Source: Anthoceros angustus
Taxonomy: Eukaryota > Plantae > Anthocerotophyta
Direction: 5' to 3'
Assembly: GCA_010909165.1 (NCBI GenBank)
Contig: VJWM01000063.1
Span: 930,001-994,000 of the forward strand
Length of the DNA: 64,000 nt
Shown: positions 5,729 to 42,989 of the stretch, piece after piece
How positions within the stretch are numbered: position 1 is the first letter of the stretch
Layout: each line of letters opens with the position of its first letter
Notes under the pieces: generated by a model
What the model was told of the DNA's origin: nothing
Database searches by the model: none
What the model saw: the letters and a program-made list of their open reading frames with translations, nothing else
Position numbers and translations under genes: made by a program

Positions 5729-5740
5729 GGATCTTTGGGG

Positions 5741-18191: not shown

Positions 18192-21100
18192 GGATGCTGG
18201 AATTGGTGAGGCAAGATAACACGAGAAGGTGTTGGAGCAGAATGATGGCAAAGATCTCCGTGGGAATTCCACATCGTACAAAGATCCATTCGCCATGTTT
18301 AATGATTATTAGAGAGTGCAATGTTGTGATTATTAGAAAGTTTGCGCAATGTTTGAGATCATTAGAAAGTTTGTGCAATGTTTGATGATCATTAGAAAGT
18401 TTGTGCAATGTTTGGCGATTATTAGAAAGTGCAATGTTGTGATTATTAGAAAGTGCAGACGTTGCATTATTGGTCTCAAGCTAACAAACATCTTCTCGAC
18501 GCGATTAAAAGATAAAACACCCACCAAGCACAACACGAGGCTCCTGTGTAGCACAATAATAACACTCACCAAACACAATACGAGATCCCAAGTAGCACAA
18601 TATTAGCCCCAAGTAGTTCGTCGTTTCTTCTTTCTCTTTTAAGAAATGACGCGGATTTTATCTCGAAATCCTAAATACCCAAAACTTCTCATGACTTGAC
18701 AACGGCCTGCGATTTATCCGTCTTTGAAATACATACTCAAAAGGCCCCATCTACCTATACATCGATACCGCAGAAAGTGAAGGCCTAACCCACTGGTATG
18801 CAGTATGCAAACCTCACTTTCAACGCCTAACCATTGCACCTTTTTGTGCTAGAGACGTGCTATGGTTTGGGTTTTGTATGGCAAAAATCATGCGTGTTGA
18901 GCAAAAATCTTGGGTACAAAAAGGTATCCAACTCAATGGAACGAAGAGACTGCTGCGATGATATACCATGTGATACTAAGTGCTCCAATTGGGAACCATG
19001 CCAAGACTTGTGACATTAGTTCCTACCCATCTTGGAACCATGCCGGGCCATGTTACAATTTAAGGGCATAATTAGTAATTATGACCAAGTGCATAACAAG
19101 GCCTAATTGTTTTAGTAGTGTGAAAGAAACATCAAGGGTAATGGCGTTACTTTCTTCCATGTTGTGATGAACCTACACCAAAACGCGTTTAAGCGTGTTT
19201 GGGTATCTACTTGTTTTAAAATATTTACAAGGATATTTATTTACTATTTATCCTATTTTCCAATTATAAACAATAGAGCAAGGTGCTCCAAGCCAAATGC
19301 AATTTTTCTCATCTCAATGCAATAATAGATGAAAACAATGAGCTATTAGAAACACCCTAGTTTTGTTTTCCAACAAATGACCCTTCCATGCATGTTTTAG
19401 TGAATTCATTCTAAACCTAAACTCACATAGCAACACACCACCATATGCAGATTGAGCTTCCACAAAATATGCCACTACTCGGTAGCGGTTGATAACAAAA
19501 AAGGAACATGGAGGGATCTCAATATCAAGGTATGGTGTACCGTTCTCATCAATGAGTTTTTATGGTGGTTCACGTGAAATGTTTTCCGCGACATACGACG
19601 GAAAGCTTGTATGTCACACACTTGGTGACATCGGCCACGCAGCCATCCCCGCGTGTATTGTTGTCAGGTGTGTGATACGCACATCTTTATGCATAGAAGA
19701 TGCCGAAGGATTGATCGTGTCTGAGGAAAATAATGTTGACACACACAACTCACGCCATGATGAGATTGGTACGCCATACCGAGGTGCTTCACAACATCGG
19801 AACGGGTTTACAATTGACCCAATAACCATACACACATCGAACTAGAGGCCTCCTATGTCTGCCGCTGTTGGGAGGCACACATTGTGGTCCCATGGGCCAT
19901 AAATGCCACAACTGCGGTTAGGCCTCTCGGGGTGGGTTCACGGACCCTCATGTCAAGAGCCGTACTAGGACTTGGTCTAAACCATGTCATGGTGGCCATT
20001 TACGGTCCTCGCCGCTTCACACGGACTTGGCCTAAACCATGTCATGGTGGCCATTTGCAGTCCCTGGTTTCACACCGACGAGCGGTGTGGGCCACCCCTT
20101 ACTTTCACTTATTGATAAATAAAGTGAAATGTCTTAGGCAAGAGGAGGTGAAAAGGACCCCTTCCTTCGCACCAACACATTCATACCATCTTCTAGAGTC
20201 ATTATATTTTGTCTTCCACCCGCTCTTGTGCGGCCTTCTCTAGTTTGAGTTTATTTTAGGTTGTTAGATTTTCTATTTAAATACATTTTATCATGTTATC
20301 CAAGATGGATCCACATACTAGGCATTTATGGATGTGTTTTATTATTGGGCTTATGTTATATATTACTTTGGAGCTTTGGAGTACACATCATCCATGTGAA
20401 TGGATTTGTTTTCGCACATCCATTATGATCGAGTCCGGTACTTTCTTGAGTGATCTCCATAATGCTTCATTAGAGATTTAGCATTCGGATCCAAGACGCA
20501 TTCAATTCAAGATGGATGCGGTAGCATGAAGATGCCCGAACACATTCGTCCACTCGAGCAACGGTCAGAGGCAATCCAGCTCTATCTCCTCATAATCCTA
20601 TGCCATGCCTCCATCAATTTTGGTAGGCCACACAACTCATACCTTCAAACCGCTAGATCCGATGGGGCGTGGAACCCTAAAGTGTGTGGGAGCAAGGAGG
20701 CATGGAGCCGGCCTGTAGCATGGTAACTCGAGCGAAAGAAGAAAAGTGCAGTTAAGGTGCAAATTTGAATTAGAGACAACGCATTGCATGCCCTAGTGTT
20801 GTGCACAATGCAATGATGCGCCACTAATCTCTACTCAATGTGAAGACATCTCACATCTAGATCTCACTCAACCATGGGCTGTCCGGGGTGAAGGTGCTTG
20901 CCACCGCTAGGATGCCGATTCTCTATTTCATTAACCTACAAGAGTGTTTTCTAACTCTTCATAAAGTAATACCTTCTTGGACCTGAGCAGGCGCCCATTA
21001 AGCCTATTTTAATTTGTTTATTATGAAAGTGATTTTACTCCTTCATATCGGGATGGTCATATTTGTAAAAGTAGCTTATATTTATAATGTATATCTACTA

Positions 21101-21846
21101 TGATTTAGACTTTCTTGAGATGCCAAAATTTATATATCGTAAAATAATGTTTCCATCAATAGCTCCTAGGTTGATATATGTAATTTTGGCCATGAAACCA
21201 CGAAATTATGGATTTAGAGGGTTTTCATTTAGATCCAAGACGCGTTTTACACCCTTCAAAGTAGTGACTAGGAGCCATCACTATTCCTAAGGAGACCTTG
21301 TTCGATGAGAAGGGAAAAGGAAGTCGGGCACCAACCGTTTCTTTGCATTACCTTCTCACTCGACATATGCTTGCAAGCCTATAATCAAGGTGAGGCCCAT
21401 ACCACGTTGACACACTAATTACGATATTGCTCTCTCAAGATGGGAAATGCTAATCCACAAGAGGGATGCAGTTGCTTAACATGGAATTCTGTAATAGGAA
21501 GCTGCCAAGAAGGAGAGAGGATAATACTACTTAAGGAGTCTGTCCAGGAGGCTAGTAAGGTCGACTTGCTCCCACTATTATGTCTATTTTTGTCACATTA
21601 ATCATAATTTGAATTAATATACAAAATAAACAAATCATATTGTCTATATATGTGATATGGCCACATGTAAATTAATTGATTGCATTGAGTCTCTCCATAT
21701 CCTATTGTCTATATATGTGATGTTGCCTAGGTGTAAATTTATTCGATTTGCGAGTCCGTGAAACTAGTTTGCCAATGAAACTAGTCCCCTTTGCCTTTTC
21801 TCTCTTCGTGATCCTCTCATTTTTCGACAAGTCGTGATATCAACCA

Positions 21847-23652
21847 ATGCAAAGAGGTGTGGCCAGTGGCGGCGAATGGCGTGTGTAGTTAATGGCGATG
21901 GGAGCAACTCTTCGCTACCAATGCCGGGTTTGTAGTTAATAGCATGGCTTGAACTTGAAGCGTTGCGAGCATCAATCCTCTAAGTCGTAAGGAGGATGAA
22001 GGATGGCGGAAGTAGTATGCGTGAGGCGATTTGCCCATGGAAATCGGAGAAGAAATGGAGCCCAAGGCTTAGTAAATGGTAACGGTGCCAACTCAAAGTG
22101 CGAGCAATGCTCCAAGGAATCGAGAAACATGGGCGATTGGAGGCGGTCAATTTTTGGGGTAGCAAGTGGTAATGGGGCAACAAATGGTAATGCCTCTTAT
22201 GATGGCAAGAGGAGAGTGAAGCACACTTTCAGCAAGAGACTGGGTCGAAGCTTGAGGCCCACGAGCGGCGGTCACTCAAAAGTACTTACACTGGTGAGTC
22301 TCCTTTGGATGAGCCCAAGGCCAAGGGTGCCCGTGGTGAAGACGGTGTCGAAAATTGTGTCCCTTCAAGAAACGAATGATCTTGAACTGCTCCATCGGCC
22401 ACTTAGAGTCGGAACTTCATATAAGGATGCAGACTTGCACTTCACGCTCAAGTGAGGCCTCGCATCGTAGTAAGCTAAAGGACACAGATAGCGAGCCTCT
22501 TCCACATCAACAGTGAAAGTGCTAATGTGGTGAAGAATGTAAGTCGATGAGGCGGACGTCATGACAAAGTGAGCAGAGAAAAAATGTCATTGTTCATGGG
22601 AAGAGGTGGGCGATGTGGGCGACAAACCTCCCGTGTTAGGGGAGAGAATTATGAATGGAATCTCCAACAAGGTTGTTCGAGCTAGTGAAAATGGTCACAA
22701 GACAAAGCAAAGTAATGGAGTGGACCGGCATAACAAACATAATGGAGTGTTCAAGGGTTTGCGAAAATGAAGGGTGGATCCAAGGCACGTGAAGAGAAGA
22801 AGCAAATGCCCAAAGTGGGCGGATCTCCGCCAAGGTCTATGATAATGGTCAAGCACAGGCTTGCGGTCATAGTGACGATGTGTATCGGGCAATTGAGACA
22901 CTTCTATGGTGAAGGGAGTTGTCCAAAATGGTGGCGATGGCCTCATAGTGGATAGTAATGGTCATCATGTCATTGAGGCGAGCATGAGCCATGCATCTAC
23001 CCCAAGCGAGGCTGCGACAAAGCAGGGTGAGTGGAATATCACGTTTGGTACTATAGCTGAATGTGACATAAAGGCATTAGTTGAGAATACAAGTTCAGGA
23101 GATGGTGAAAGGAGTTATAGCCCTAAAGCCATCGGTGAAAGTAAGGAACATGTTAAACCTCCCCCAGAGATTGGTTCAAATAATATAAATGATGTTGAGG
23201 GGCAATTTCTTGCAAAGGCGATTCCAGATAGTGGGGCAGCCACATTAATCAGATTTGTGAGAAGGAGGAGACATATATACCTCGGAGATATCTTGGTGCG
23301 ATCAAGCTGGAGGAAGCTGAAAATAGTCAACCCGAGATCGCACCTAACCGTCATGCAACAATAAAACTTTCTGCTTCGGCTCTACCTTTCACTCCTGCAT
23401 CGGCTGTGACTCCTATTCGGAAGACTGGCTTTCCACTGCCATGTGGCAACGGTTACTCCCAGGTGCAAGGTAGCCTTGCTCCTCCCAACTGCCACCTCGG
23501 TCTCGATCGCAGCCTTGACCCCTCTTTTCTCAAGTGTTCAGCTAGTGGTGGTGTCGACAAGGCAAGGGTCTTGGGCCGGGAAGAGGGTGATCATGAACCC
23601 TAACGCCATGGAATACATCCCAAGGTCAAAGAGGCCCTTGTTGTCCCTTTAA
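21847..23652 (+). CDS. Array gene copy 4
   Basis: Long in-frame pieces 22003..22455 and 22906..23364; 23443..23652 ends VIMNPNAMEYIPRSKRPLLSL*. Confidence 0.6.
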
Positions 23653-23678
23653 GGATGCTGAATTGGTGAGGCAGCATA

Positions 23679-25409
23679 ATGGCGATGGGAGCAACTCTCT
23701 TGCTACCAATGCCGGGTTTTGTAGTTAATAGCATGGCTTCCGAACTTGAAGCTGCATGCATCAATCCTCTAAGTAAGGAGGATGAAGGATGGCGTGAAGT
23801 AAGTACGAAGGCGATTTGCCCATGGAAATCGGAGAAGAAATGGAGCCCAAGGCTTAGTAATGGTAACGGGTGCCAACTCAAAGTGCGAGCAATGCTCCAA
23901 GGAATCGAGAAACATGGGTGATTGGAGGCGCTCAATTTTTGGGGTAGCAAGTGGTAATGGGGCAACAAATGGTAATGCCTCTTATGATGGCAAGAGGAGA
24001 GTGAAGCACACTTTCAGCACTGGCCGGAAGCTTGAGGCCCCGAAGCGTCACACTCAAAAGTACCGTGGTGAGTCTCCTTTGGATGAGCCCAAGGCCAAGG
24101 GTGCTACCACCGTGGTGAAGACGGTGTCGAAAATTGTGTCCCTTCAAGAAACCCGAATGATGTCTGAACTGCCCAGCCGGCCACTTAGAGTGGAACTTCA
24201 TATAAGGATGCAAGACTTGCACTTCACGCTCAAGTGAGGCCTCCGCATGCTGGTAGTAAGCTAAAGGACACAGATAGCGAGCCTCTTCCACATCAACAGT
24301 GAAAGTGAAGAATGTAAGTCGGGATGAGGCGGACGTCATGACAAAGTGAACGCAGAGAAAAAATGTCATTGTTCATGGGAAGAGGTGGGCCGATGTGGGC
24401 GACAAACCTCGTGTTAGGGGAGAGAATTATGAATGGAATCTCCAACAAGGTTGTTCAGCTAGTGAAAATGGTCACAAGACAAAGCAAAGTAATGGAGTGG
24501 ACATAGCCACAAACATAATGGAGTGTTCAAGGGTTTGCGAAAATGAAGGGTGGATCCAAGGCACGTGAAGAGAAGAAGCAAATGCCCAAAGTGGGCGGAT
24601 CTCCGCCAAGGTCTATGATAATGGTCAAGCACTGGCTTGCAACCATAGTGACGATGTATCGGGCAATTGAGACAGCTTCTATGGTGAAGGGAGTTGTCCA
24701 AAATGGTGGCGTGGCCTCATAGTGGATAGTAATGGTCATCATGTCATTGAGGCGAGCATGAGCCATGCATCTACCCCAAGCATCGAGGCTGCGACAAGCA
24801 ACAGCAGAGTGGAATATCACGTTTGGTACTATAGTGAATGTGACATAAAGGCATTAGTTGAGAATACAAGTTCGGAGATGGTGAAAGGAGTTATAGCCCT
24901 AAAGCCATCGGTGAAAGTAAGGAACATGTTAAACCTTCCGCAGAGATTGGTTCAAATAGTATAAACGATGATGAGGGGCAATTTCTAAAAGGCAATTCCA
25001 GATAGTGGGGCAGCCACATTTAACAGATTTGAGAAGGAGGAGACATATATACCTCGAGAGATATCTTGGTGCGATCAATCGTGGAGGAAGCTGAAAATAG
25101 TCAACCTAAGATCGCACCTCAGTCATGCGACAATAAAACTTTATGCTTCCTACCTTTCACTCCTCCATCTAGTGACTCCTATTCTAAGACGGCTTTCCAC
25201 CGCCATGTGACAACGGTTACTGGTGCAAGGTGGCCTCTTGCTCCTCCCAACTGCCACCTCCTCGATCGCAGCCTTGACCCCTCTTTTCTCAAGTGTTCAG
25301 CTAGTGGTGGTGTCGACAAGGCAAGGGTCTTGACGGGAAGAGGGTGATCATGAACCCTAACGCCATGGAATACATCCCAAGGTCAAAGAGGCCCTTGTTG
25401 TCCCTTTAA
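23679..25409 (+). CDS. Array gene, near-complete tandem duplicate lacking the first ~15 codons and the upstream region
   Basis: Junction GCAGCATAATGGCGATGGG returns to the 5' part of the ORF and runs to the stop at 25409. Confidence 0.5.
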
Positions 25410-26252
25410 GGATGCTGGAATTGGTGAGGCAGATAATGAAGGTGTTGGAACGAGAATGATGGCAAAGATCTCCGTGAGGAATTCCACATCGTACAAAGAT
25501 CCATTCGCCATGTTTTAGCAGTTATTAGAGAGTGCAATGTTTGATTATTAGAAAGTTTGCTAATGTTTGTGAGATCATTAGAAAGTTTGTGCAATGTTTG
25601 ATGATCATTAGAAAGTTTGTGCAATGTTTGGCGATTATTAGAAAGTGCAATGTTTGATTATTAGAAAGTGCAGCGTTGCATTGTGGTCTCCAAGCTAACA
25701 AACATCTTCTCGCGATTAAAAGATAAAAACACCACCAAGCACAACACGAGGCTCCCTGGTAGCACAATAATAACACTCACCAAACACAATACGAGATCCC
25801 AAGTAGCACAATATTAGCCCCAAGTAGTTCGTCGTTTCTTCTTTCTCTTTAAGAAATGACGCGGATTTTATCTCGAAATCCTAAATACCCAAAACTTCTC
25901 ATGACTTGACAACGGCCCTGCGATTTATCCGCCTTTGAAATACATACTCAAAAGGCCCCATCTACCTATACATCGATACTGCAGTAAGTGAAGGCCTAAC
26001 CCACGCCATGTGCAGTATGCTCTCCGGCTCAACGCCTAACCATTGCACCTTTTTGTGCTAGAGACGTGCTATGGTTTGGGTTTTGTATGGCAAAATCATG
26101 TGCGTGTTGAGCAAAAATCTTGGGTACAAAAGGTATCCAACTCAATGGAACGAAGAGACTGCTGCGATGATATACCATGTGATACTAAGTGCTCCAATTG
26201 GAACCATGCCAAGACTTGTGACATTAGTTCCTACCCATCTTGGAACCATGCC

Positions 26253-26461
26253 GCCATGTGACAACGGTTACTCCCAGTGCAAGGTGGCCTTGCTCCTCCC
26301 AACTGCCACCCTCTCGATCGCAGCTTGACCCCTCTTTTCTCAAGTGTTCAGCTAGTGGTGGTGTCGACAAGGCAAGGGTCTTGGACGGGAAGAGGGTGAT
26401 CATGAACCCTAACGCCATGGAATACATCCCAAGGTCAAAGAGGCCCTTGTTGTCCCTTTAA
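26253..26461 (+). pseudogene. 3' fragment of the array gene (second PAM2-like motif only)
   Basis: Part of a 1.05 kb duplication. ORF track 26240..26461 ends KRVIMNPNAMEYIPRSKRPLLSL. Confidence 0.55.
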
Positions 26462-29400
26462 GGATGCTGGAATTGGTGAGGCGAGCAGCAGGAAGGTGTT
26501 GGAACGAGAATGATGGCAAAGATCTCCGAGGGAATTCCACATCGTACAAAGATCCATTCGCCATGTTTAATGATTATTAGAGTGCAATGTTTGATGATTA
26601 TTAGAAAGTTTGCGCAATGTTTGAGATCATTAGAAAGTTTGTGCAATGTTTGATGATCATTAGAAAGTTTGTGCAATGTTTGGATGATTATTAGAAAGTG
26701 CAATGTTTGGATGATTATTAGAAAGTGCACGACGTTGCATTGTGGTCTCCAAGCTAACAAACATCTTCTCGCGATTAAAAGATAAAAACACCACCAAGCA
26801 CAACACGAGGCTCCCTGTGTAGCACAATAATAACACTCACCAAACACAATACGAGATCCCAAGTAGCACAATATTAGCCCCAAGTAGTTCGTCGTTTCTT
26901 CTTTCTCTTTAAGAAATGGCCGATTTTATCTCGAAATCCTAAATACCCAAAACTTCTCATGACTTGACAACGGCCCCCGATTTATCCGTCTTTGAAATAC
27001 ATACTCAAAAGGCCCCATCTACCTATACATCGATACCGCAAAGTGAAGGCCTAACCCACTTGTATGGTACGATCGCTAAGCCTCCGCTTTCAACGCCTAA
27101 CCATTGCACCTTTTTGTGCTAGAGACGTGCTATGGTTTGGGTTTTGTATGGCAAAATCATGTGTTGAGCAAAAATCTTGGGTACAAAAGGTATCCAACTC
27201 AATGGAACGAAGAGACTGCTGATGATATACCATGTGATACTAAGTGCTCCAATTGGGAACCATGCCAAGACTTGTGACATTAGTTCCTACCCATCTTGGA
27301 ACCATGCCGTGCCATGTTACAATTTAAGGGCATAATTAGTAATTATGACCAAGTGCATAACAAGGCCTAATTGTTTTAGTAGTGTGAAAGAAACATCAAA
27401 GTGCGTGGTTACTTTCTTCCATGTTGTGATGAACCTACACCAAAACGCTTAAGCGTGTTTGGGTATCTACTTGTTTTAAAATATTTACAAGGATATTTAT
27501 TTACTATTTATCCTATTTTCCAATTATAAACAATAGAGCAAGGTGCTCCAAGCCAAATGCAATTTTTCTCATCTCAATGCAATAATAGATGAAAACAATG
27601 AGCTATTAGAAACACCCTAGTTTTGTTTTCCAACAAATGACCCTTCCATGCATGTTTTAGTGAATTCATTCTAAACCTAAACTCACATAGCAACACACCA
27701 CCATATGCGAGATTGAGCTTCCACAAAATATGCCACTACTCGGTGTTGATAACAAAAAGGAACATGGAGGGATCTCAATATCAAGGTATGGTGTACCGCT
27801 TCTCACGGTTTTATGGTGGTTCACGTGAAATGTTTTCCCGACATCGACGGAAAGCTTGTATGTCACACACTTGGTGACATCGGCCACGCAGCCATCCCCG
27901 TGTATTGTTGTCGGTAGGTGTGTGATACGCACATCTTTATGCATAGAAGATGCCAAGGATTGATGCGCATAACTAGAGAAAATAATGTTGACACACACAA
28001 CTCACGCCATGATGAGATTGGTACGCCATACCGAGGTGCTTCACAACATCGGAACGGGTTTACAATTGACCCAATAACCATACACACATCGAACTAGAGG
28101 CCTCCTATGTCATCGCGTTGCTGTTGGGAGGCCACACATTGTGGTCCCATGGGCCATAACAGCCACAACTGCGGTTAGGCCTCTCGGTGGGTTCACACCG
28201 ACCCTCATGTCAAGAGCCGTACTAGGACTTGGTCTAAACCATGTCATGGTGGCCATTTACGTCCTCGCCTTCACACGGACTTGGCCTAACCATGTCATGG
28301 TGGCCATTTGCGATCCCGGTTCACGCGGTGTGGGCCACCCACTTTCACTTATTGATAAATAAAGTGAAATGTCTTAGGCAAGAGGAGGTGAAAAGGACCC
28401 TTCCTTCGCACCAACACATTCATACCATCTTCTAGAGTCATTATATTTTGTCTTCCACCCGCTCTTGTGCGGCCTTCTCTAGTTTGAGTTTATTTTAGGT
28501 TGTTAGATTTTCTATTTAAAATACATTTTATCATGTTATCCAAGATGGATCCACATACTAGGCATTTATGGATGTGTTTTATTATTGGGCTTATGTTATA
28601 TATTACTTTGGAGCTTTGGAGTACACATCATCCATGTGAATGGATTTGTTTTCGCACATCCATTATGATCGTGAGTCCGGTACTTTGGTGATCTCCATAA
28701 TGCTTCATTAGAGATTTAGCATTCGGATCCAAGACGCATTGAATTCAAGATGGATGCAAAGGCGGGACGCATGAAGATGCCGAACACATTCGTCCACTCG
28801 AGCAGTGCAGGCAATCCGTGCTCTATCTCCTCATAATCCTATGCCATGCCTCCATCAATTGGTAGGCCACACAACTCATACCTTCAAACCGCTAGATCGA
28901 TGGGCGTGGAACCCTAAAGTGTGTGGGAGCAAGGAGGCATGGAGGCACCAACGATAGCATGGTAACTCGGCGAAAGAAGAAAAGTGCAGTTCGTAAGGTC
29001 GCAAATTTGAATTGAGACAACGCATTGCGCATGCCCTAGTGTTGTGCACAATGCAATGATGCGGCCACTAATCTCTACTCAATGTGAAGACATCTCACAT
29101 CTAGATCTCACTCAACCATGGGCTGTCCGGTGGCTTGAAGGTGCTTGCCACCGCTAGGATGCCGATTCTCTATTTCATTAACCTACAAGAGTGTTTTCTA
29201 ACTCTTCATAAAGTAATACCTTCTTGGACACGAGCCCCATTAAGCCTATTTTAATTTGTTTATTATGAAAGTGATTTTACTCCTTCATATCGGGATGGTC
29301 ATATTTTGTAAAAGTAGCTTATATTTATAATGTATATCTACTATGATTTAGACTTTCTTGTGATGCCAAAATTTATATATGCGTAAAATAATGTTTCCAT

Positions 29401-30088
29401 CAATAGCTCCTAGGTTGATATATGTAATTTTGGCCATGAAACCACGAAATTATGGATTTAGAGGGTTTTCATTTAGATCCAAGACGCTTTTACACCCTTC
29501 AAAGTAGTGACTAGGAGCCATCACTATTCCTAAGGAGACCTTGTTCGATGAGAAGGGAAAAGGAAGTGGGCACCAACCGCTTGTCTTTGCATTACCTTCT
29601 CACTCGACATATGCTTGCAAGCCTATAATCAAGGTGAGGCCCATACCACGTTGACACACTAATTACGATATTGCTCTCTCAAGATGGGAAATGCTAATCC
29701 ACAAGAGGGATGCATTGCTTAACATGGAATTGCTGTAATAGGAAGCTGCCAAGAAGGGGAGAGGATAATACTACTTAAGGAGTCCAGGAGGGCTAGTAAG
29801 GTCACTTGCTCCCACTATTATGTCTATTTTTGTCACATTAATCATAATTTGAATTAATATACAAAAATAAACAAATCATATTGTCTATATATGTGATATG
29901 GCCACATGTAAATTAATTCGATTATTGAGTCTCTCCATATCCTATTGTCTATATATGTGATGTTGCCTAGGTGTAAATTTATTCGATTAGTTCTCGTGAA
30001 ACTAGTTTGCCAATGAAACTAGTCCCCTTTGCGCCTTTTCTCTCTTCGCGTGATCCTCTCATTTTTCGACAAGTCGTGATATCAACCA

Positions 30089-31903
30089 ATGCAAAGAGGT
30101 GTGGCTTCAGAGGCGAGGCGAATGGCGTGTGTAGTTAATGGCGATGGGAGCAACTCTCTGCGCTACCAATGCCGGGTTTGTAGTTAATAGCATGGCTTGA
30201 ACTTGAAGCGTTGCAGCATCAATCCTCTAAGTAAGGAGGATGAAGGATGGCGAGGAAGTAGTACGTGAGGCGATTTGCCCATGGAAATCGGAGAAGAAAT
30301 GGAGCCCAAGGCTTAGTAAATGGTAACGGGTGCCAACTCAAAAGTGCGAGCAATGCTCCAAGGAATCGAGAAACATGGGCGATTGGAGGTCAATTTTTGG
30401 GGTAGCAAGTGGTAATGGGGCAACAAATGGTAATGCCTCTTATGATGGCAAGAGGAGAGTGAAGCCTGCTTTCAGCAGACTGGTCGAAGCTTGGAGGCCC
30501 CGAAGCGTGCACACTCAAAAGTACACGCACGTGGTGAGTCTCCTTTGGATGAGCCCAAGGCCAAGGGTGCTACCGTGTGGTGAAGACGGTGTCGAAAATT
30601 GTGTCCCTTCAAGAAACCGAATGATCGAACCCTCACTCGGCCACTTAGAGTCTGGAACTTCATATAAGGATGCACTTGCACTTCACGTTCAAGTGAGGCC
30701 TCCGCATGCTGGTAGTAAGCTAAAGGACACGGATAGCGAGCCTCTTCCACATCAACATGAAAGTGCTAATGTGGTGAAGAATGTAAGTCGGGATGAGGCG
30801 GCGTCATGACAAAGTGAACGGTAGAAAAAATGTCATTGTTCATGGGAAGAGGTGGGCCGATGTGGGCGACAAACCTCCTGTTAGGGGAGAGAATTATGAA
30901 TGGAATCTCCAACAAGGTTGTTCAAAGCTAGTGAAAATGGTCACAAGACAAAGCAAAGTAATGGAGTGGACGGCATAGCCACAAACATAATGGAGTGTTC
31001 AAGGGTTTGCGAAAATGAAGGGTGGATCCAAGGCACGTGAAGAGAAGAAGCAAATGCCCAAAGTGGGCGGATCTCCGCCAAGGTCTATGATAATGGTCAA
31101 GCACTGGCTTGCAAGTCATAGTGACGATGTGTATCGGGCAATTGAGGCGGCTTCTATGGTGAAGGAGTTGTCCAAAATGGTGGCGATGGCCTCATAGTGG
31201 ATAGTAATGGTCATCATGTCATTGAGGCGAGCATGAGCCATGCATCTACCCCAAAGCGGCTGCGACAAAAAGCGTGGTGAGTGGAATATCACGTTTGGTA
31301 CTATAGCTGAATGTGACATAAAGGCATTAGTTGAGAATACAAGTTCAGGAGATGGTGAAAGGAGTTATAGCCCTAAAGCCATCGGTGAAAGTAAGGAACA
31401 TGTTAAACCTCCCCCAGAGATTGGTTCAAATAATATAAATGATGTTGAGGGGCAATTTCTTGCAAAGGCGATTCCAGATAGTGAGGGCAGCCACATTTCT
31501 AAACAGATTTGTGAGAAGGAGGAGACATATATACCTCAGAGAGATATCTTGGTGCAGTCAACTGTGGAGGAAGCTGAAAATAGTCAACCTGAGACTGCAC
31601 CTAACCGTCATGCAACAATAAAACTTTCTGCTGCGGCTCTACCTTTCACTCCTCCATCGTGTGACTCCTATTCGGAGGCGGCTTTCCACGCCATGTGACA
31701 ACGGTTACTCCCAGTGCAAGGTGGCCTTGCTCCTCCCAATCAGCCACCTCGGTCTCGATCGGCGACTTGGCCCCTCTTTTCTCAAGTGTTCAGCTAGTGG
31801 TGGTGTCGACAAGGCAAGGGTCTTGGGCCGGAAGAGGGTGATCATGAACCCTAACGCCATGGAATACATCCCAAGGTCAAAGAGGCCCTTGTTGTCCCTT
31901 TAA
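30089..31903 (+). CDS. Array gene copy 5 (best-preserved C-terminal half)
   Basis: ORF track 31240..31698 (GEWNITFGTIAECD...ATIKLSAAALPFTPP) and 31661..31903 (...IMNPNAMEYIPRSKRPLLSL*). Confidence 0.62.
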
Positions 31904-34900
31904 GGATCTGGGAATTGGTGAGGCATAGCATGCGAAGGTGTTGAACGAGAATGATGGCAAAGATCTCCGGTGGGAATTCCACATCGTACAAAGATCCATT
32001 CGCCATGTTTATGATTATTAGAGAGTGCAATGTTGTGATTATTAGAAAGTTTGCGCAATGTTGTGATCATTAGAAAGTTTGTGCAATGTTTGATGATCAT
32101 TAGAAAGTTTGTGCAATGTTTGGCGATTATTAGAAAGTGCAATGTTGTGATTATTAGAAAGTGCAGCGTTGCATTATTGGTCTCAAGCTAACAAACATCT
32201 TCTCGCTGATTAAAAGATAAAACACCACCAAACACAACACGAGGCTCCCGTAGCACAATAATAACACTCACCAAACACAATACGAGATCCCAAGTAGCAC
32301 AATATTAGCCCCCAAGTAGTTCGTCGTTTCTTCTTTCTCTTTTAAGAAATGGCCATTTTATCTCGAAATCCTAAATACCCAAAACTTCTCATGACTTGAC
32401 AACTGCGATTTATCCGTCTTTGAAATACATACTCAAAAGGCCCCATCTACCTATACATCGATACTGAAAGTGAAGGCCTAACCCACGTTGTATGGTGCAG
32501 TATGCCAAGCCTCCGCTTTCAACGCCTAACCATTGCACCTTTTTGTGCTAGAGGCGTGCTATGGTTTGGGTTTTGTATGGCAAAATCATGTGCGTGTTGA
32601 GCAAAAATCTTGGGTACAAAAAGGTATCCAACTCAATGGAACGAAGAGACTGCTGCGATGATATACCATGTGATACTAAGTGCTCCAATTGGAACCATGC
32701 CAAGACTTGTGACATTAGTTCCTACCCATCTTGGAACCATGCCGGCCATGTTACAATTTAAGGGGCATAATTAGTAATTATGACCAAGTGCATAACAAGG
32801 CCTAATTGTTTTAGTAGTGTGAAAGAAACATCAAGGGTACGTAAGCGTTACTTTCTTCCATGTTGTGATGAACCTACACCAAAACGCGTTTAAGCGTGTT
32901 TGGGTATCTACTTGTTTTAAAATATTTACAAGGATATTTATTTACTATTTATCCTATTTTCCAATTATAAACAATAGAGCAAGGTGCTCCAAGCCAAATG
33001 CAATTTTCTCATCTCAATGCAATAATAGATGAAAACAATGAGCTATTAGAAACACCCTAGTTTTGTTTTCCAACAAACGACCCTTCCATGCATGTTTTAG
33101 TGAATTCATTCTAAACCTAAACTCACATAGCAACACACCACCATATGCGAGATTGAGCTTCCACAAAATATGCCACTACTCGGTAGCGGTTGATAACAAA
33201 AAAGGAACATGGAGGATCTCAATATCAAGGTATGGTGTACCGTTCTCATGTTGGTTTTATGGTGGTTCACGTAAAATGTTTTCCGCGACATCTGACGGAA
33301 AGCTTGTATGTCACACACTTGGTGACATCGGCCACGCAGCCATCCCGCGTGTATTGTTGTCAGTGGGTGTGATACGCACATCTTTATGCATAGAAGATGC
33401 CGGATTGATGCGTACTGTCTGAGGAGGAAAATAATGTTGACACACACAACTCACGCCATGATGAGATTGATGCATACCGAGGTGCTTCACAACATCGGAA
33501 CGGGTTTACAATTGACCCAATAACCATACACACATCGAACTAGAGGCCTCCTATGTCATCGCGCTGCTGTTGGGAGGCCACATTGTGGTCCCATGGGCCA
33601 TAACCACAACTGCGGTTAGGCCTCTCGAGGTGGGTTCACACGGACCCTCATGTCAAGAGCCGTACTAGGACTTGGTCTAAACCATGTCATGGTGGCCATT
33701 TACGGTCCTCGCCGCTTCACACGGACTTGGCCTAAACCATGTCATGGTGGCCATTTGCGATCCTCGGTTTCACCGACAGCGGTGTGGGCCACCTTACTTT
33801 CACTTATTGATAAATAAAGTGAAATGTCTTAGGCAAGAGGAGGTGAAAAGGACCCTTCCTTCGCACCAACACATTCATACCATCTTCTAGAGTCATTATA
33901 TTTTGTCTTCCACCCGCTCTTGTCGGCCTTCTCTAGTTTGAGTTTATTTTAGGTTGTTAGATTTTCTATTTAAATACATTTTATCATGTTATCCAAGATG
34001 GATCCACATACTAGGCATTTATGGATGTGTTTATTATTGGGCTTATGTTATATATTACTTTGGAGCTTTGGAGTACACATCATCCATGTGAATGGATTTG
34101 TTTCGCACATCCATTATGATCGGCGAGTCCGGTACTTTCTTTGAGTGATCTCCATAATGCTTCATTAGAGATTTAGCATTCGGATCCAAGGCGCATTGAA
34201 TTCAAGATGGATGCGGTAGCGGGCGCATGAAGATGCCGGCATTCGTCCACTCGAGCAAGCAGTCGAGGCAATCCAGGCTCTATCTCCTCATAATCCTATG
34301 CCATGCCTCCATCAATTCGGTAGGCCACACAACTCATACCTTCAAACCGCTAGATCGATGGGGCGTGGAACCCTAAAGTGTGTGGGAGCAAGGAGGCATG
34401 GAGCCGGCACCATGATAACATGGTAACTCGGCGAAAGAAGAAAAGTGCAGTTCGTAAGGTGCAAATTTGAATTGCGGAACAACGCATTCGCATGCCCTAG
34501 TGTTGTGCACAATGCAATGATCACGGCCACTAATCTCTACTCAATGTGAAGACATCTCACATCTAGATCTCACTCAACCATGGGCATGGTGGCTTGAAGG
34601 TGCTTGCCACCGCTAGGATGCCGATTCTCTATTTCATTAACCTACAAGAGTGTTTTCTAACTCTTCATAAAGTAATACCTTCTTGGACACTGGCAGCGTA
34701 TTAAGCCTATTTTAATTTGTTTATTATGAAAGTGATTTTACTCCTTCATATCGGATGGTCATATTTTGTAAAAGTAGCTTATATTTATAATGTATATCTA
34801 CTATGATTTAGACTTTCTTGTGATGCCAAAATTTATATATCGTAAAATAATGTTTCCATCAATAGCTCCTAGGTTGATATATGTAATTTTGGCCATGAAA

Positions 34901-35149
34901 CCACGAAATTATGGATTTAGAGGGTTTTCATTTAGATCCAAGGCGTTTTACACCCTTCAAAGTAGTGACTAGGAGCCATCACTATTCCTAAGGAGACCTT
35001 GTTCGATGAGAAGGGAAAAGGAAAAGGTATGGGCACCAACCGTTTCTTTGCATTACCTTCTCACTCGACATATGCTTGCAAGCCTATAATCAAGGTGAGG
35101 CCCATACCACATTGACTGCTAATTACGACATATTGCTCTCTCAAGATGG

Positions 35150-35154
35150 GAAAT
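35150..35154. other. Target-site duplication (left copy GAAAT; right copy TAAAT at 50716-50720)
   Basis: The uninterrupted unit reads AAGATGGGAAATGCTAATCC. AAAT is present on both sides of the element (4/5 match; right junction is noisy). Confidence 0.7.
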
Positions 35155-35722
35155 TGTGGCGCGACTTTCGTGATGGCGGTAGGCGCGCACAATCCGTGTC
35201 GTTGTAGGAAGAAGTCCGTTCCCAAGGGAATGATAGGCTCGTTTACGCGTTTGGTGATTCCTACCTTAGCGCTCGTTCGGCCTCAACACACATACTCCTA
35301 ACTACTCTAGCGTTCACCGTCTGGGCCGGTATGGCCAAGCGTTTAAGGACCCGTTCGCGTCCGTATCGTTCACATCGTCCCTCACACAGTCCTTTCCTCT
35401 CTCCCCTCACGCTACACTCCTCGGTCTTAGAAAAGCGCGGGTTACAGTCGGACCTCCTCCGTCGTTCCGGGCCTCTCCGTCAAGACTCTGCGCCCTCCGG
35501 AGTTCCTCGGCTCACACGTTCGATCCGTTCGGTCTTTGGGGCGCGGCTCGAGACGCACGATCACCCTTCCTGCACACACCACAACGTTAGGTCCGTCACG
35601 GGACCTTGATCAATCTCCCTGCGTGCACCTTTCGGTGACTCGGGACTCACGTTAGCAAGAAGACACACAAAGGTGCAGAGCGGCATCAACACCAAGAGAA
35701 GATGATTTATTGGCCTTAGCCC

Positions 35723-35730
35723 CTCTTATA
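35723..35730 (-). promoter_or_regulatory. LTR TATA box (3' LTR copy)
   Basis: Minus strand GTAGTATAAGAGGGG, ~570 bp from the LTR 3' end and conserved in the other LTR. Confidence 0.6.
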
Positions 35731-35899
35731 CTACGCCGAAGGTCGGCGCCTTTATTACACCTCTATTACGTGAGGCCCATTTCGGTGTACCTAACGGCCG
35801 CCTACTACCACCTATTCCACCTATCGCCGTCGGTGGTGTGGATAGCCCCTCATTCCTTCTTGGCACGGTGGCAAAACCGCCGGCGCGCCAATCGGATGA

Positions 35900-38800
35900 T
35901 CAGCGGGACCCCTTCCTCTTCCAGTGCATCTGCGCCCGTGGCGGCACGCGATCACCAAGTCCTCCTCGTCCTCCCCTCTTCTCTCTCCCGGGCCCTGCGT
36001 GGGCCCTCAAGGGTTGGATCTGCTGGGGTTGGTGATGGCTCTCCCCACTCCCGAGTTTGGACCTCGGGACCTGTCTCGACTCGGTCCGGACCTCGGGGTC
36101 GGCCTTCCTCAGTCCGGACCTCGGGGTCGGCCTTCCTCTCTCCCGGCCTTCTTTGAGTCCGGTCCTCGGGGGCTTGCCTCTGGTCCGGTCTTGGACCCAA
36201 CCCTTCCCACAGGGTCCGGACCTCGGGGCCGGACGAGTCTGGATCCTAAGTCGACTTCCTTGAGGCGGACCTCGGGGTCGGCCTTCCTCAGTCAGGACAA
36301 AGTCCGGACCCTCGCTCTGGGCATGCCTCCTCGCCCGGGCCAGGTTCATCCAGCCCTCCCTTGGTTCCCGAATGCCCGGTTGCTTTCCCTTCAAGATCCT
36401 CCCTCGTCCTTCCATGCGAGGTCTGCTTACCTCGGTGTGGCGCCTTCCTCCTCCGGTTCCTCCTGCTCTCCTTCGCGCTGCTGCGTCGTCAAGCAGCGCT
36501 CCTAGGACTCCAGCGGTTGTCTTGTCCCGGGTCCTCCCTCGCTCCTCCTTGGTCCCTTGGAGTCCACCCTCCCACCTGGGGTGGCGCGGGACCTCGAGCC
36601 TTGAGGAGCTCTGCGTGGTAGTAAGTCGGAATCGACTTGAATCGCCTCCTCCACATGAGCCGGGCACCGTACTCCCTCCTCCAGGTGCTCGTGGCCAGGC
36701 GGTCGCCACTTCTTGCTTTGTCTCGTGGCCAAGCTCACGGTATGGCGGGCGGACTCCCTTGAGGCCGTCAAGGCTGCCTCCGTTACCTCTTGCAACCTTG
36801 CTGCTGCTCGGCGTTCTCCTCCTCCGTTGTTGCTTGACTCCGCCATTTGCGGGCCATGGGTGAGCTCTCCTTCCTTGAGGCGGACCTCGGGGCCGGACGA
36901 GCGGTACCTTTTCCTCGGTGCCTTCCTCCCTTCTTCTATTCTTTCCGGAGGTCCTCCACTTCCTTCTCCAGGCGGGCGGTATCCCGTCAGGCTCAGCTTC
37001 CGCCACGTCCTGCCGCTGGCGTCGAACTCCTTGCGCCGCCTTCTCCTCCGTCTTCAAGCGGGCTGGGCGTTCCACCTCTCGAAGTCTTGGATTCTCTCGT
37101 TGAGAACCCCTGCTCCGTCATCTTGGGTTGCAACTCCAAGGTGTCCTTGTTGTCCTCCGACTCACCTCCGCCCTTCTACCTCCTGCAGTGCACCACAGGG
37201 TCCCCAATCTCCCGGGTCTTGGCCTCGCCTCCTCACGGCTCGGCCGTGCTTGCTCCATGACCACTTGCTCGGCCTTGTTGGCGGCTCTCGGCCGCCTCTC
37301 TCCACCGGTTCGATCACGCGATAGTGATCGCGATCGGCGCCCGTGGCCTCCGCCTCCTTGGCCACCTTCACAGCCTCTCGGCTTGGCTCTGGTCGGTCAG
37401 GCTGCCTCGCGAGATCCGCGCCCGTTCGCTTGCGCCGGGCGTCCTCGCTTCCTGCTGCGCTACGCCCCTCTGCCTGCAGAGGTCCTCCGCCCGCGCTTGG
37501 GCCTCCTTGGCACCTTGTTCCTCGGTGAAGGAATTTAGTCGGTCCTTGCGGATGGACCAAACCTCCCTCTCCGCCTCCCGGCGTTTTCCTTCCTCAATCC
37601 GAGGCTTGGCCTTCCTTCTCGCCTCCACAGGCTCCCTCAGCTGCTCACGGAGGAGCACCATGCGCCTCGGGTGGCTTCCACCTCACAGGCCTTCTCGGCC
37701 ATCCCGCCTGAGACCCAGGCATACCGTCCATGGCGGTGGCAGGAACGTGTGTTTCTTCACGGCGCTGATGAGGCTCCCACAAAGTCCGTGGCGGGCCGGC
37801 ATCTGATCCGTCGAGGACCTCCATCTGCGATCCAAGTCGGTGGGTTCTCGGACAATCGGGACCCTTAGGTCACGAGTGGCTCGGGCTTCCCCTCCTTGGC
37901 CCTTTTGGCGCGAGCTCCTTCTCCGCCCTTTTCTCACAGGGCTCGGCGGAGGTGATGGAGTCGGGAGCACGCCCTTTGCCCCTTCACATCGGCGGCAGGA
38001 CCCGGCTCTGGATCACGGCTGCGCAGTGTCCTCCGCTCCAGGCGGCGTCCTTTACGCCCTCCTTCACTTCCTCCGCTTGCCACTCAGGTGGCGGGGAAGA
38101 ATGCCACCGGCCCAGGGTGCAGCGTTGGTAGCCGTGGTCTTGCGTCTCTTGACTCTCTCACAGTCGGCGGGGCTCCTCGGTAGGAGTGATGGCGGTGCGG
38201 GGGCGGGGGCCTTCTGCTTTGGTATTGGTTGGGGCACGGAAGGAGGAGGCGGGGTGCTTCCCATACTTCCACAGGTGGTGAGGGGTCCGTTCGGGCGTAT
38301 GGAGTCAGGAATCCTCGGTCGTCCTCCTCCAGTCCGTTTGGTTTTTCGGCCGGCCTCCTCCCTCGGCGCCCTTGCCGCTCCACTTGGGAGGCCTCCGGTC
38401 CTTTCGGGCGCTCGCTCAAGCTCTCCTTCCTTGAGGAGTTGAAATGCCCCATACATGGATCGGTATGGGGCGGCCAGAATGGCGAGGCTTCTCGCTCCGA
38501 GCTTGCGAGCCTCACAGCCGGGCGAAGATAATCCTTCCCAGTCCGCCCTCTTCCCAGCTGCGCGTGCGGGAACACAATAGATTATCACCAAGGTGATCCA
38601 CCTTGGTGAGTAGGTTCGATGGACGATGATCCGGGCCACACCGACTCGGCTCAGCGTCGGATATCGACCAACCGTTGGTGGTCCGTTGCGTCGAGCCTTA
38701 GCATCTGCTGGCTGGACCTATCTTCCCTTCGCCTTGAGGGCTCGGCACCACTCCCCTCTTCCTCCTTGGGGCGGTTGTAGGCCGCCGGGACCTCAAGGTC

Positions 38801-39040
38801 CATCGCCTTGGGTCCTCGGAGGTTCTTGGACCGCACCTCCTTGTTGACGCCCCCTTGACATCTTGGGCAAACTCCGGACGGTGGTGTCAAAGGTCGGACC
38901 ATTTGGAACACATCCAAATGCCACTCCTGCACCAATTCTCCCACTTCCTGGGCGAGCCCAAAGTCCGGATAGCGCGGGTCACAATGTTGCGCTCCACAAG
39001 GTTCCATGGCTCCCAAACTTCGCGGGCTTTTGGGTGCCAT
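35900..39040 (-). CDS. Extra ORF inside the U3 region of the 3' LTR (~1000 aa, frameshifted; accessory transposon protein of unknown function)
   Basis: Consecutive minus-strand pieces: MAPKSPRSLG..ELVQEWHL..NLREDPRRWTLEV.AAYNRPKEEEG..ARIIVHRTYSPRWITLVIIYCV..AGKRADWEG, a Pro-rich linker, then a long Glu/Arg/Ala coiled-coil-like tract (LREQLRE..EARRKAK..EAQARAEDL). The 3' end is approximate. Confidence 0.6.
36059..36300. repeat. ~25-30 bp GC-rich tandem repeats within the LTR
   Basis: (T)CCGGACCTCGGGGTCGGCCTTCCTC(AG) repeated several times; another copy at ~36880 and degraded equivalents at ~46550-46770. Confidence 0.8.
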
Positions 39041-39623
39041 CGCCTTCTCCTCCTTGGTTCAGCTTGTCGGAGGCTGGCGCACGTTGAGCCTTCTTGCGTT
39101 CGCTCGACCTCAGCGGTGAGCGCGCCGGCGTCAGTGTCCACGAGATACGCGAGCCGGTTGCGGGCGCAAGAGATCGCGTGTCTCGAGGCGCGGCGAAATG
39201 ACCTTCTTCGCGACCACGCCGGGAGTAAGCGGGCGGGCGCCTCTTCCACTGTCGTAGCGCGGTGCATGGCTTACTCGGCGCTTCTGCTGCCGCGTACTCG
39301 GCCCCTCGCGCGGCCAGGCGTGAATACACCTGCGGCCTCTGGGTTCGTCACCGTGCATGCCGTCCTCCACTCGGTCGTCACGTGGCGTCGCCGTCCGTCC
39401 TTCGGCTCCAACTTCTAAGTTACTTTCCTGGCGTACTTATCACCTGGTCAGTGGGTCGGACTTACCGTCGCCCGCCATCGTAGGTCTAATGCGTTCCTCA
39501 CTCCGGTCGGAGTATACTCAGTGCCGTCAGTGCTATGCTTATTTCCTCCTTTTCGCCTCATTTTATCCTTGCTCCACAAAAAACAAACCCTACCTAATTT
39601 CTAACCCCGAAGTCCAGTCCACA

Positions 39624-39637
39624 TACTCCCTTCTCAC
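39624..39637 (-). promoter_or_regulatory. Polypurine tract
   Basis: Minus strand GTGAGAAGGGAGTA directly precedes the TG of the 3' LTR. Confidence 0.8.
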
Positions 39638-39659
39638 TGTTGGCGTCTCGCCAACACTA

Positions 39660-40640
39660 AGCGTGGTACTTTTCACCGCCACCCGTTCACCCAGTGGGCG
39701 GTTCACCATCCAAGCGCGGTGAGCGGACCCATTGGGGTATACTCGCGACTTGGTAAGGCCCCATCCATCGTAGGTGGAGTTTACAGGAAGTGCATATGTC
39801 GGTATCGTAAGGAGGCGGATCTCCCTCCTTCACATACTCCACGATTCTAAGGCGCTATCATGCCACGCTTGCGTTGATTACATACCGATTGCATTATTGT
39901 TGTTGCGCCTCTTCCGGTCCTCCGTATCTTGCACCCTAGCAACGCTCCGGTTGGCTCTCTTCATCCGTTAAGCGCCTTTCCATCATGACCGGTGTTGGCA
40001 CCTCAAACTCGGCCGGCATAACGGGTGAGTGCCCATAGGTCGATAATACGGAGTTCGTTGCGTGGTTACCTTCTGCCGTTACGAGCATAGCGATGGCGAC
40101 TTTGTATCGATCGTGCGCATAGTTAACCGTCGACTTATTGAGGATCGGCGGATAAGTCCATTGGTCTTCTCCGTCGGTCCGTTGGCCGGATTGTAGGGGC
40201 GTTTACGATGTGTGATGCGAAATAGTCCGTCATTGCGTTATCACATCATTGAGGAAATGGGTTCCCCTATAAACCCACGGACACCCATACCTTGTGATGA
40301 TGTTTTCGTAGGAATTTGGCCACCGTGCTCATGATCCGTTCGGTAGCGGCTTCAACCCACAGTGCGATGATCGTTGCCACCAAGATGTACCGCTTTGTGT
40401 GTGCCTGGTCGTTGGTGTATGGGTCCAGTCGATGCCCACTTCTCAAAAGGCGCTAGTGCTAGTATGGGCACTAACGGCCATTGAGTTGTGGCGTCGGCTT
40501 CCGATCCGACAAGCATCACACTTCTTCACAATTGGTGTGTTTCCCCATACATGGTGGGCCACGATTACCCGACCTCAAGATTTTCTTGGTGGTGACTGCT
40601 GTTGCATAATGTCCACCACCTAGTCCTTGCATCCCTTTAT
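39660..40640 (-). CDS. pol: Integrase (HHCC, core, GPY/F motif; no chromodomain)
   Basis: GGHYATAVTTKKILRSG..WPTMY..VKKCDAC zinc finger, PFEKW.ID and RYILVAT...WVEA core, KLHLRWMGPYQV..YPNGS GPY/F module. Ends ~30 bp before the PPT. Confidence 0.88.
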
Positions 40641-40949
40641 TACCACCTCCGTTTCACTTTGTTGGGTACCTTCGTTCCACTCGGCCCCTTAAAGATGCAT
40701 GCTCTGATAGGAAAGGCGGCGTAGTGCACAAAGGCTGCCGTGGACCGGTTCGATTCGTTGGTAGCTCCATCTCCCATAGGTACCGTTCCAACTCCGCGTA
40801 AGAGGGCCGCCCCTTCGCTCCCTTCTCCGCCTGCCGTGGGTCCATCCCGGCTTGGGTTTGTCGGTGCTCCTCTACCTCCTCCTCTATCGCGCCACCAATT
40901 CCTCATCCAGGAAGGCGTCCTCTTGATCCTGCGGGCAGGCTCCGTCTTT

Positions 40950-41330
40950 AATGGATAAGAAGTGGTGTTGCCGTCCTTGCCTAGTCTCCACCTCAAATGT
41001 GAACTCCTGTGAGCAGAATCCACCTCGCAATTAAATGGGACAAATGCCTTGTTCACCAAATGCTTGGTAGTGATCAACATAGAACACAAACTCATTGGGC
41101 GGAAGGTAGTGTCGAATTTCTTAGCACGTATACCATACCCAATGCCTCTCGCTCCGTAGTGTACCTCCGTTCGCGTCGTGAGCTGTCTTCCGCGTAGTAG
41201 ATTGGGTGATCCCTCGTTTATCATCTTTTGGTGAGCACTACCGATGGCGGTGACACATCCGTACACATGGAATCGCTTCCCCGGTCCGGTCCTTTGAGTC
41301 TTTGGGGCCGACAGTGGTGGTCTCTGAATC
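40950..41330 (-). CDS. pol: RNase H domain (frameshifted)
   Basis: KRFHVY.TDVS.TAIGS.L, RQLT..E..YTTERE.LGMVY..KKF, FVFYVDH, HLVNK and RWILL..EF fragments. Confidence 0.85.
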
Positions 41331-41429
41331 GCCTCCCTTTGGCGTCGGGTCCATTCCTCCTCCTTCTGAGTAGCTCCGTTAGCTGGAGGCCCGCTTTGCA
41401 AAATCTTGTATGAACGCCTATAGTAACCA

Positions 41430-42060
41430 CCATGCCCGGAATCCCGTAACTCCTTCAAGTTCGTTGGTGGTCGAGGTGGATGACTTTCACCTTGTCTTGG
41501 TCCACCTCTATCCCTCTTACCGACACTCGGTGAACAAGATTCCCTCTGTCATGCAGTAGCATTCTCGGGATGCGAGCCTGATTGAGTCTCCTACATCGTT
41601 CCAAACACTTCCATGTCACGTGTTTGTCCTCCTCTCGTGCACCAGAGTCAGAACACCTCCATGAAGTCCCTCGGAATTCCGGAAGACATTGGTCACCATC
41701 CGCATAAATGATCCGGGTGCTCTGTCATCCAAGGCACTCCGTTTGTAGGCAAGCGTCCCCACTCCGTGGTGAATGTTGTCTTATCGATCAGGCTCCCTTA
41801 GGTGTATGGCGGTTGTAGCGGAGTGGCCGAGAAGGAGTAGGTACTCCGCCACCTTGTCCGATGTCGTCCACAAAGGGCATGGGAAATGGTCCTTCCGTGG
41901 CGGCGTTAAGCTTTCTCCGATCTCGGACCCGAATCGCCCTGCGCTTCTTGACACGACCACAATGGGCGCCACCCACTCCTTTTACGATTGGGAAGATGAT
42001 GTCGCTTCCGGATACTTATCCGGGACTTCCTTGACCTTGGCGAGTGCTTGGGATTGATTT
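41430..42060 (-). CDS. pol: Reverse transcriptase domain (frameshifted)
   Basis: WVAPIVVV, RKLNAAT..DHFPMPFVDDI, FTTEWG..AYKR, APGSFMRMV and KELR..G..GYYRR fragments. Confidence 0.9.
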
Positions 42061-42689
42061 ATCTTGCCTAATCCGAGCAGGCACCGCTCACGGCTTCATC
42101 TCTATCTTCGCCTTGTTTGAATGCCTTTCATATCGTGACCTTGAAAGCAAACACCTGAATTCCCCAACAAGCGTGAGGTCTCGTTTTAACCCTCGGCATG
42201 CCCTTGCGAATTTGAGGAATTTCCTGGAACCTCCACGTCTTCCACATCGTCGGGTTGGCCGTCTCTCTTTCTCTTCGCTTGCTCGTCAAATCGTCCTCCA
42301 TCCGGGTTCATCTTCACGCATTCCCCACTCCGAAGAGCTCGTCAGTGAAGCGGGTTACTTCTCGGTTCTTCCGTCCTCTGCTGGACCCTCCTCTTGATTG
42401 CCTTCCCCGGCTCTTGACGTGAGTCCACCCTAAAACAATCGATGACCTCCTCGTCCACCTCCGCTCCAAAGGCGTCCCTCATAATCCATCTCCTCCTCGA
42501 CCACGTGATTTTGGGAAAGGGTAGTCCTCATTCGTATCCTCGCGTTCATCGTCCCCTTGTCTTGAGGTGTACCCCTACTGTGGTCTGGTTTCTCCCAGTC
42601 GTGTCCTTACTCAGTGTCGCTACCCCTTCCCTTGGATCCCAGTCCACTTGAAGTGTATTTCCTTCCGTCCAAGTGTAGTTTTATGCGGC

Positions 42690-42960
42690 GAGGCCCGGCC
42701 GCTAGCAGGACCTCATACCCCAGGTCGGGTCGATAATGACAAAATCTAATGTATAGGGGCTCCGCTATGGTGGCTTGGACTCGGGACAACTCCCTGCTGG
42801 CTCGCGCGACATGTCCGCCATCACGAGGGTTTTGGTGGATGGCTCGAAGGTGGTGAACCCGGCCGTCTTGCGGTGGCCTCGGTGATGAGGTTCACTCGAC
42901 CCGTGTCTAGAGGCACGTTTTAATTACACACCCGCAATTTCCACACTGCTGGCGCGTCAG
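42690..42960 (-). CDS. pol: Aspartic protease domain
   Basis: L-D-T-G at ~42900-42911 (minus strand CTA GAC ACG GGT) and downstream GYEVLL, equivalent to the ILGRPW motif. Confidence 0.75.
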
Positions 42961-42989
42961 TATGAGATCGACCCTTACCTCCACGTTCT

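Follow-up and report, generated by a model that had tools for sequence, protein, structure and literature searches.

A tandem array in Anthoceros angustus (contig VJWM01000063.1) raises the question of whether the ~1.8-kb open reading frame (ORF)-like stretch carried by each of its units is a massively amplified working gene or a passenger of repeat DNA. The original prediction took the former position, describing a gene array for a regulator of translation or mRNA decay that binds the poly(A)-binding protein (PABP) through two PAM2-like motifs near the end of a disordered protein of ~600 residues. The answer depends on (i) the structure of the array, (ii) the origin of the differences between its copies, (iii) the presence of a frame beneath those differences, (iv) the identity of the motifs, and (v) signs of homology, domains, and expression.

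The array itself was borne out. In the window, i.e., the whole stretch of 64,000 nucleotides that was analyzed, about ten head-to-tail units of ~5.45 kb fill positions 1–35154 and 50717–64000, and the array is split by one LTR retroelement. Start-to-start spacing of the units is 5437–5623 nt where there is neither an internal duplication nor an insert. The 1.8-kb ORF-like stretch occurs in seven full and three partial or duplicated copies, with 91–94% identity as assembled, and the gene part of the unit is repeated at 5740–7106 and at 23677–26264. In short-read DNA contigs of another, independent sample of this organism, the k-mer depth over the unit is 60–450; thus, the array is real and high-copy. 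The features of the array are as follows, with unit coordinates referring to the unit at 16380–21846.

3929–5728, plus strand: ORF-like copy, followed by a partial tandem duplicate at 5740–7106
10776–12728, plus strand: ORF-like copy with an internal ~158-bp duplication (11786–12100)
16380–18191, plus strand: ORF-like copy of the reference unit (16380–21846)
21847–23652, plus strand: ORF-like copy that contains the piece 23232–23600
23677–25409, plus strand: duplicated ORF-like copy (unit positions 48–1815) with an extra tail fragment at 26252–26461
30089–31903, plus strand: the reported ORF-like copy, ATG to TAA, broken as assembled; purine-rich, GC skew +0.16, AT skew +0.10
30089–35154, plus strand: repeat unit with the reported copy (unit positions 1–5069), truncated at 35154 by the retroelement
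35155–50716, no strand assigned: GC-rich (~60%) LTR retroelement of ~15.5 kb, inserted at unit position ~5066–5069 and not part of the gene
35163–39621 and 45682–50713: LTRs of the retroelement, ~4.5 kb each
52378–54161, plus strand: ORF-like copy, the most broken, with zero stop-free pieces of at least 70 aa
58483–60312, plus strand: ORF-like copy

The ORF-like segment is a compositional island in the unit. In 2-kb bins (30001–32000 and the matching bins of other units), it has a GC content of 0.48, a GC skew of +0.15 to +0.19, and an AT skew of +0.10 to +0.13, compared to a GC content of about 0.42 and skews of about 0 in the remainder of the unit. This composition fits a foreign, coding-strand origin. 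Just 3′ of the stop of the frame lies a 30-nt minisatellite of about 5–6 copies (31931–32117), which is also found at 7217–7368, 12831–12995, and 26559–26726 and reaches, at about 450, the highest k-mer depth of the independent contigs. A search of the whole window against Rfam returned no match, and a scan for bacterial-type promoters and terminators, which is irrelevant to plant DNA, gave counts at shuffle level.

Differences between the copies follow the local sequence context. Over the whole unit, the per-site deviation between copies is 0.26 at CTG, 0.21 at CGG, 0.20 at CAG, 0.14 at CCG, and 0.12 at ACG, while at the A/T-rich triplets AAT, TTT, ATT, and AAA it is 0.004–0.015. The A/T-rich triplets taken together span 0.004–0.018. 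Expressed as ranges, deviation amounts to 19–26% at CAG/CTG, 14–21% at CCG/CGG, about 10% at the remaining CG sites, and 0.4–2% at A/T-rich sites. Each 1.8-kb copy carries 28–50 indel events relative to the majority, and 58% of 330 such events involve CWG/CG positions, a class that accounts for 11.7% of the sequence. Sites in the hot spots are scrambled, not mutated (e.g., GCCTGCT vs GCACACT). Away from them, 120 of 3700 clean columns are variable, mostly as singletons; blocks of 30–76 nt are identical in all ten copies, and the clean gene blocks contain one substitution in 283 nt across ten copies. When the independent short-read contigs are compared with the assembly, gaps outnumber letter differences (e.g., 14 gaps and 3 letters in 245 nt).

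The contexts with the highest deviation coincide with those in which plants methylate cytosine symmetrically, CG and CHG. In Nanopore consensus sequences, errors are known to concentrate in 5-methylcytosine (5mC) motifs (PMC6591954). Because the errors sit at CG/CHG contexts, the clean sites are near-identical, and such Nanopore errors are documented, the frameshifts that differ between copies are read as mostly base-calling errors at methylated cytosines and not as mutations. These scattered breaks do not represent shared decay. The error context of the assembly also points to dense methylation, at both CG and CHG, across the unit and the frame within it. More generally, base calls in this assembly are systematically wrong at CAG/CTG, CCG/CGG, and CG sites of methylated repeats, where indels and scrambled letters occur, and frameshifts and copy divergence in the repeats of this genome, or in any methylated gene, are not to be taken at face value.

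The same caution extends to the retroelement. Its two LTRs are 83–87% alike as assembled, an identity that has probably been lowered by the same CG/CHG miscalls as in the array and is thus unusable for dating the insertion. Within the internal region of the element, a ~700-bp tandem duplication with 98% identity occupies 43441–44843. On the 3′ side of the element (50717–52377), unit positions 5066–5467 are followed by positions 1–381 and then by a 468-bp piece (51506–51973) that is 80–82% like the 3′ end of the LTR, after which unit position 5069 recurs; the array therefore seems to have undergone rearrangement or duplication since the insertion of the element.

The ~1.8-kb frame predicted for each unit was upheld for its start, its end, and the stretch between them, but not as an open frame. 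The sequence ATGCAAAGAGGT is present at every aligned start of the stretch, and an in-frame TGA or TAA lies 1–4 codons 5′ of the ATG in all eight copies that were checked. All ten copies that reach the end of the stretch are identical over its final ~65 nt, which contain VIMNPNAMEYIPRSKRPLLSL and the TAA and end in CCCTTTAA. As assembled, none of the copies is open, and the longest stop-free piece among all of them is 160 aa. Within the reported copy, the relevant features are as follows.

30077–30079, plus strand: in-frame TGA, three codons 5′ of the ATG
31237–31695, plus strand: longest natural stop-free tail piece (153 aa), the query of the exhaustive homology search
31612–31653, plus strand: PAM2-like motif 1, ATIKLSAAALPFTP, in frame 3 of this copy, with KLSAAALPFTP at 31621–31653
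31838–31876, plus strand: PAM2-like motif 2, VIMNPNAMEYIPR, in the ATG frame and nine codons before the stop, with VIMNPNAMEYIP at 31838–31873

A clear period-3 signal appears solely in 31237–31695, where it reaches 4.3 compared to about 0.75 in shuffles. A consensus of the copies, proposed in the original prediction as a check for one open frame, is not open: the plain majority consensus needs at least 15 pieces, the minus strand is equal to it, and shuffles give 21.8 ± 3. The plain majority consensus was rejected as a frame test; hot spots are miscalled in most copies.

The frame was examined with a mosaic test, in which switches between copies were permitted only inside identical, ungapped stretches of 13 nt and each path was scored by its stops and frame jumps. 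On the plus strand, the mosaic reading runs from ATG to TAA over 602 codons with no stop, zero jumps, and 16 switches, and passes through both motifs. Among the controls, the minus strand requires 1–2 jumps, the reversed-only sequence 4, and windows of equal length elsewhere in the unit 4–9 on the plus strand and 4–12 on the minus strand. Each of 44 same-letter pseudo-stop sets requires at least 2 jumps (median 5–6), and the real stop set ranks first among the 45. Random three-codon sets of like expected frequency also give zero jumps in 12 of 150 cases (8%). The mosaic test therefore argues moderately for an open frame, and the protein that it yields is unreliable in detail, some stretches wandering through wrong frames. 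These results agree with the earlier description of scattered frameshifts whose pieces tile a protein of ~600 aa, most controls needing at least one jump.

Further tests of coding capacity carried less information. All eight clean blocks are open on both strands, which is weakly informative, and codon-position bias and counts of synonymous and nonsynonymous changes are flat, the copies barely differing outside the hot spots, so that dN/dS is without power. For the same reason, nothing about selection follows from the open frame or from the perfect conservation of motif 2. The copies are read most economically as one frame of ~600 codons with both motifs in it, and the ancestral or true unit probably carried a single ATG-to-TAA frame of this length with the motifs ~75 codons apart.

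Both PAM2-like motifs were found at the predicted positions, while their identity as PAM2 was upheld in part. The ELM-type PAM2 pattern (LIG_PAM2_1) is ..[LFP][NS][PIVTAFL].A..([FY].[PYLF]|W..). and motif 1 fits it strictly. It overlies the error hot spot CTGCTGCGG and is intact in three of the ten copies. The DNA of motif 2 is identical in all ten copies. It reads NPNAxE[FY]xP with a methionine where the pattern wants Leu, Phe, or Pro, and it matches in all ten only if methionine is allowed. The six-frame translation of the 64-kb window contains no other strict match to the pattern. Eight motif-bearing pieces gave no match to any Pfam family, the PAM2 model (PF07145) included, at E≤1 or E≤10; the PAM2 model is very short, and the HMMER filters drop weak matches to it.

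In the three copies that keep both motifs, the spacing between them is 224, 226, and 220 nt, which never places them in the same frame as assembled. In the piece 23232–23600 of the copy at 21847–23652, the frames of motif 1 and motif 2 differ by no more than a single extra base at a CCGG site. The mosaic frame around the motifs has a low-complexity composition. Judged from their sequences and placement, the two motifs are unlikely to be accidental. An ITFG sequence inside EWNITFGTIAE (31288–31299) is also present in the tail, without the D-F of the known G3BP-type FGDF motif.

The claim that the protein has no recognizable folded domain held: a Pfam search of 52 pieces over two whole units, on both strands, gave chance-level matches only and no domain, as did the ORF pieces, and CLU, eIF3_p135, and TPR domains were likewise not found in the unit with Pfam. 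Homologs were not recovered by exhaustive phmmer with the 153-aa tail piece against 1.84 billion representative proteins (zero matches) or by a word-indexed search with the last 80 aa. The ESM Atlas gave no usable match, a sequence search of the PDB with the PAM2 peptides gave nothing relevant, and a literature search on PAM2 linked with REC or CLU found nothing useful. No transcript contig for the stretch is present in one small contig set from one sample, which is probably RNA, its type being guessed. In land plants, dense methylation at CG and CHG is a hallmark of silenced repeats and not of active genes, and the methylation implied here, together with the retroelement in the array, fits silent heterochromatin.

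Taken together, the evidence tips somewhat in favor of a young or homogenized, methylated, long-unit tandem repeat in which a gene, or part of one, with a PAM2-type tail was trapped and then amplified passively. The locus would then be a satellite-like array of the 5.45-kb unit, young or strongly homogenized, residing in silent chromatin methylated at CG and CHG. Each unit would hold one gene-derived, purine-rich segment, whose true sequence is probably a single frame of ~600 codons with two PAM2-like motifs about 75 codons apart in its last ~95 residues. Its copy-specific frameshifts would be mostly long-read base-calling errors at methylated cytosines. Unequal exchange would have amplified this segment passively along with the rest of the unit; the segment is at present most likely without expression, and its PAM2-like motifs would have been inherited from the parent gene and not maintained in the array. 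This reading is consistent with the array structure and its partial internal duplications, with the CG/CHG error hot spots and the near-identity elsewhere, and with an RNA set that does not cover the stretch, a retroelement insertion, and searches that returned neither a Pfam domain nor a homolog. The complete ATG-to-TAA frame with a stop just 5′ of it argues against a silent fragment, being more like a whole gene than a random piece.

Those same features lend some weight to a working ampliconic family, a rather doubtful alternative in which near-identical copies would encode a disordered ~600-aa protein whose PAM2 motifs, at the C-terminus, bind the MLLE domain of PABP and which would be expressed in an unsampled tissue or sex. 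It would account for the stop-free mosaic path from ATG to TAA through both motifs and the depletion specific to real stop codons, for the retained ATG with a stop 1–4 codons 5′, for the identity of motif 2 and the stop in all ten copies, for the period-3 signal in the 153 codons over which one copy keeps its frame, and for a purine-rich, coding-strand-like composition; the repeats of the Marchantia V chromosome, which carry the gene ORF162 (PMC9261002), offer a precedent. Against it stand the lack of an open copy as assembled, though the breaks sit at base-calling hot spots, the lack of a transcript contig in the one probable RNA set, the CHG methylation that the error hot spots imply across the frame, and the lack of a Pfam PAM2 match or a homolog. 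The conservation of motif 2 is moreover unremarkable where long identical blocks occur everywhere. A more specific version is unlikely, namely that dozens of near-identical copies code for an orphan adaptor of ~600 aa, disordered throughout, which has two tandem PAM2 motifs at its C-terminus and perhaps a G3BP-type xTFG motif and would titrate or recruit PABP in a given bryophyte tissue or sex. The proposal of a gene array for a PABP-binding regulator was thus not sustained by these searches, by the inferred methylation, or by the retroelement in the array; it is possible, with no less likelihood for a silenced gene copy that was amplified passively.

Two other explanations fare worse. The unit may be, or derive from, a non-autonomous mobile element (e.g., of a large LTR or Helitron type, arrayed by recombination), with the frame as a captured or accessory ORF, in which case the amplification would reflect the element and not the gene. 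Although a unit of 5.45 kb is long and complex for a satellite, the composition of the ORF segment is unlike that of the rest of the unit, and the internal partial duplications and the piece of LTR end at a junction that recurs reveal active rearrangement, this origin is quite improbable, with no domain of a transposase, reverse transcriptase, integrase, or gag protein on either strand of two whole units, no tRNA-Met primer-binding site, and head-to-tail joins that lack recognizable terminal repeats. Chance is more improbable still. It would require non-coding satellite DNA that is poor in stops through its base make-up and carries accidental motifs, a view consistent with the 1–2 jumps needed by the minus strand in the mosaic test, the 8% of random three-codon sets with a jump-free path, the majority consensus that is equally closed on both strands, and the silence of the Pfam PAM2 model. 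The first rank of the real stop set among 45 same-letter sets and the period-3 signal speak against it. It is also very unlikely that chance would place NPNAxE[FY]xP right before the stop and, ~75 codons 5′ of it in the same reconstructed frame, another motif that fits the full pattern, the 64 kb containing no other strict match.

The biological meaning of the array differs between these readings. If, as seems more probable, the segment is silent, the array amounts to a commonplace methylated repeat of long units in which a gene was trapped by accident. An expressed frame would represent an instance, uncommon among plants, of massive amplification of an orphan gene that targets the PABP hub, and it would provide a handle on ampliconic evolution in haploid-dominant plants. 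Should the adaptor reading be true, the array would be to plants what the ampliconic germline genes on sex chromosomes are to animals.

Known systems resemble the array in different respects. With regard to the PAM2 proteins (Paip1/2, eRF3, ataxin-2/CID3-4, ERD15/CID1, and the plant CID proteins), motif 1, LSA[SA]ALPFTP, fits their pattern, and motif 2 shares NPNAxE[FY]xP with the canonical PAM2 sequence LNPNAKEFVP but has a methionine at the Leu/Phe/Pro position. The motifs of the array likewise lie in a low-complexity tail. In contrast to the CID classes, the unit lacks their domains (LsmAD, RRM, and CUE/SMR), and the layout of the plant classes (PMC4574140) differs from the C-terminal motif pair of the array frame. 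With the multicopy genes of sex chromosomes, such as ORF162 in Marchantia, which is likened here by its literature description, and the ampliconic Y genes of animals, the array shares near-identical tandem units, one ORF per unit, and repeat DNA invaded by a transposon, but it is without an intact copy as assembled and without a transcript in the one probable RNA set. The long-unit satellites and segmental arrays with gene fragments in methylated plant heterochromatin share with it the head-to-tail homogenized units, the partial duplications by unequal exchange, the retroelement insertion, and the inferred CG and CHG signature. From gene-fragment satellites it differs in its segment, which is an apparently complete start-to-stop frame of ~600 codons and not an obvious truncated piece.
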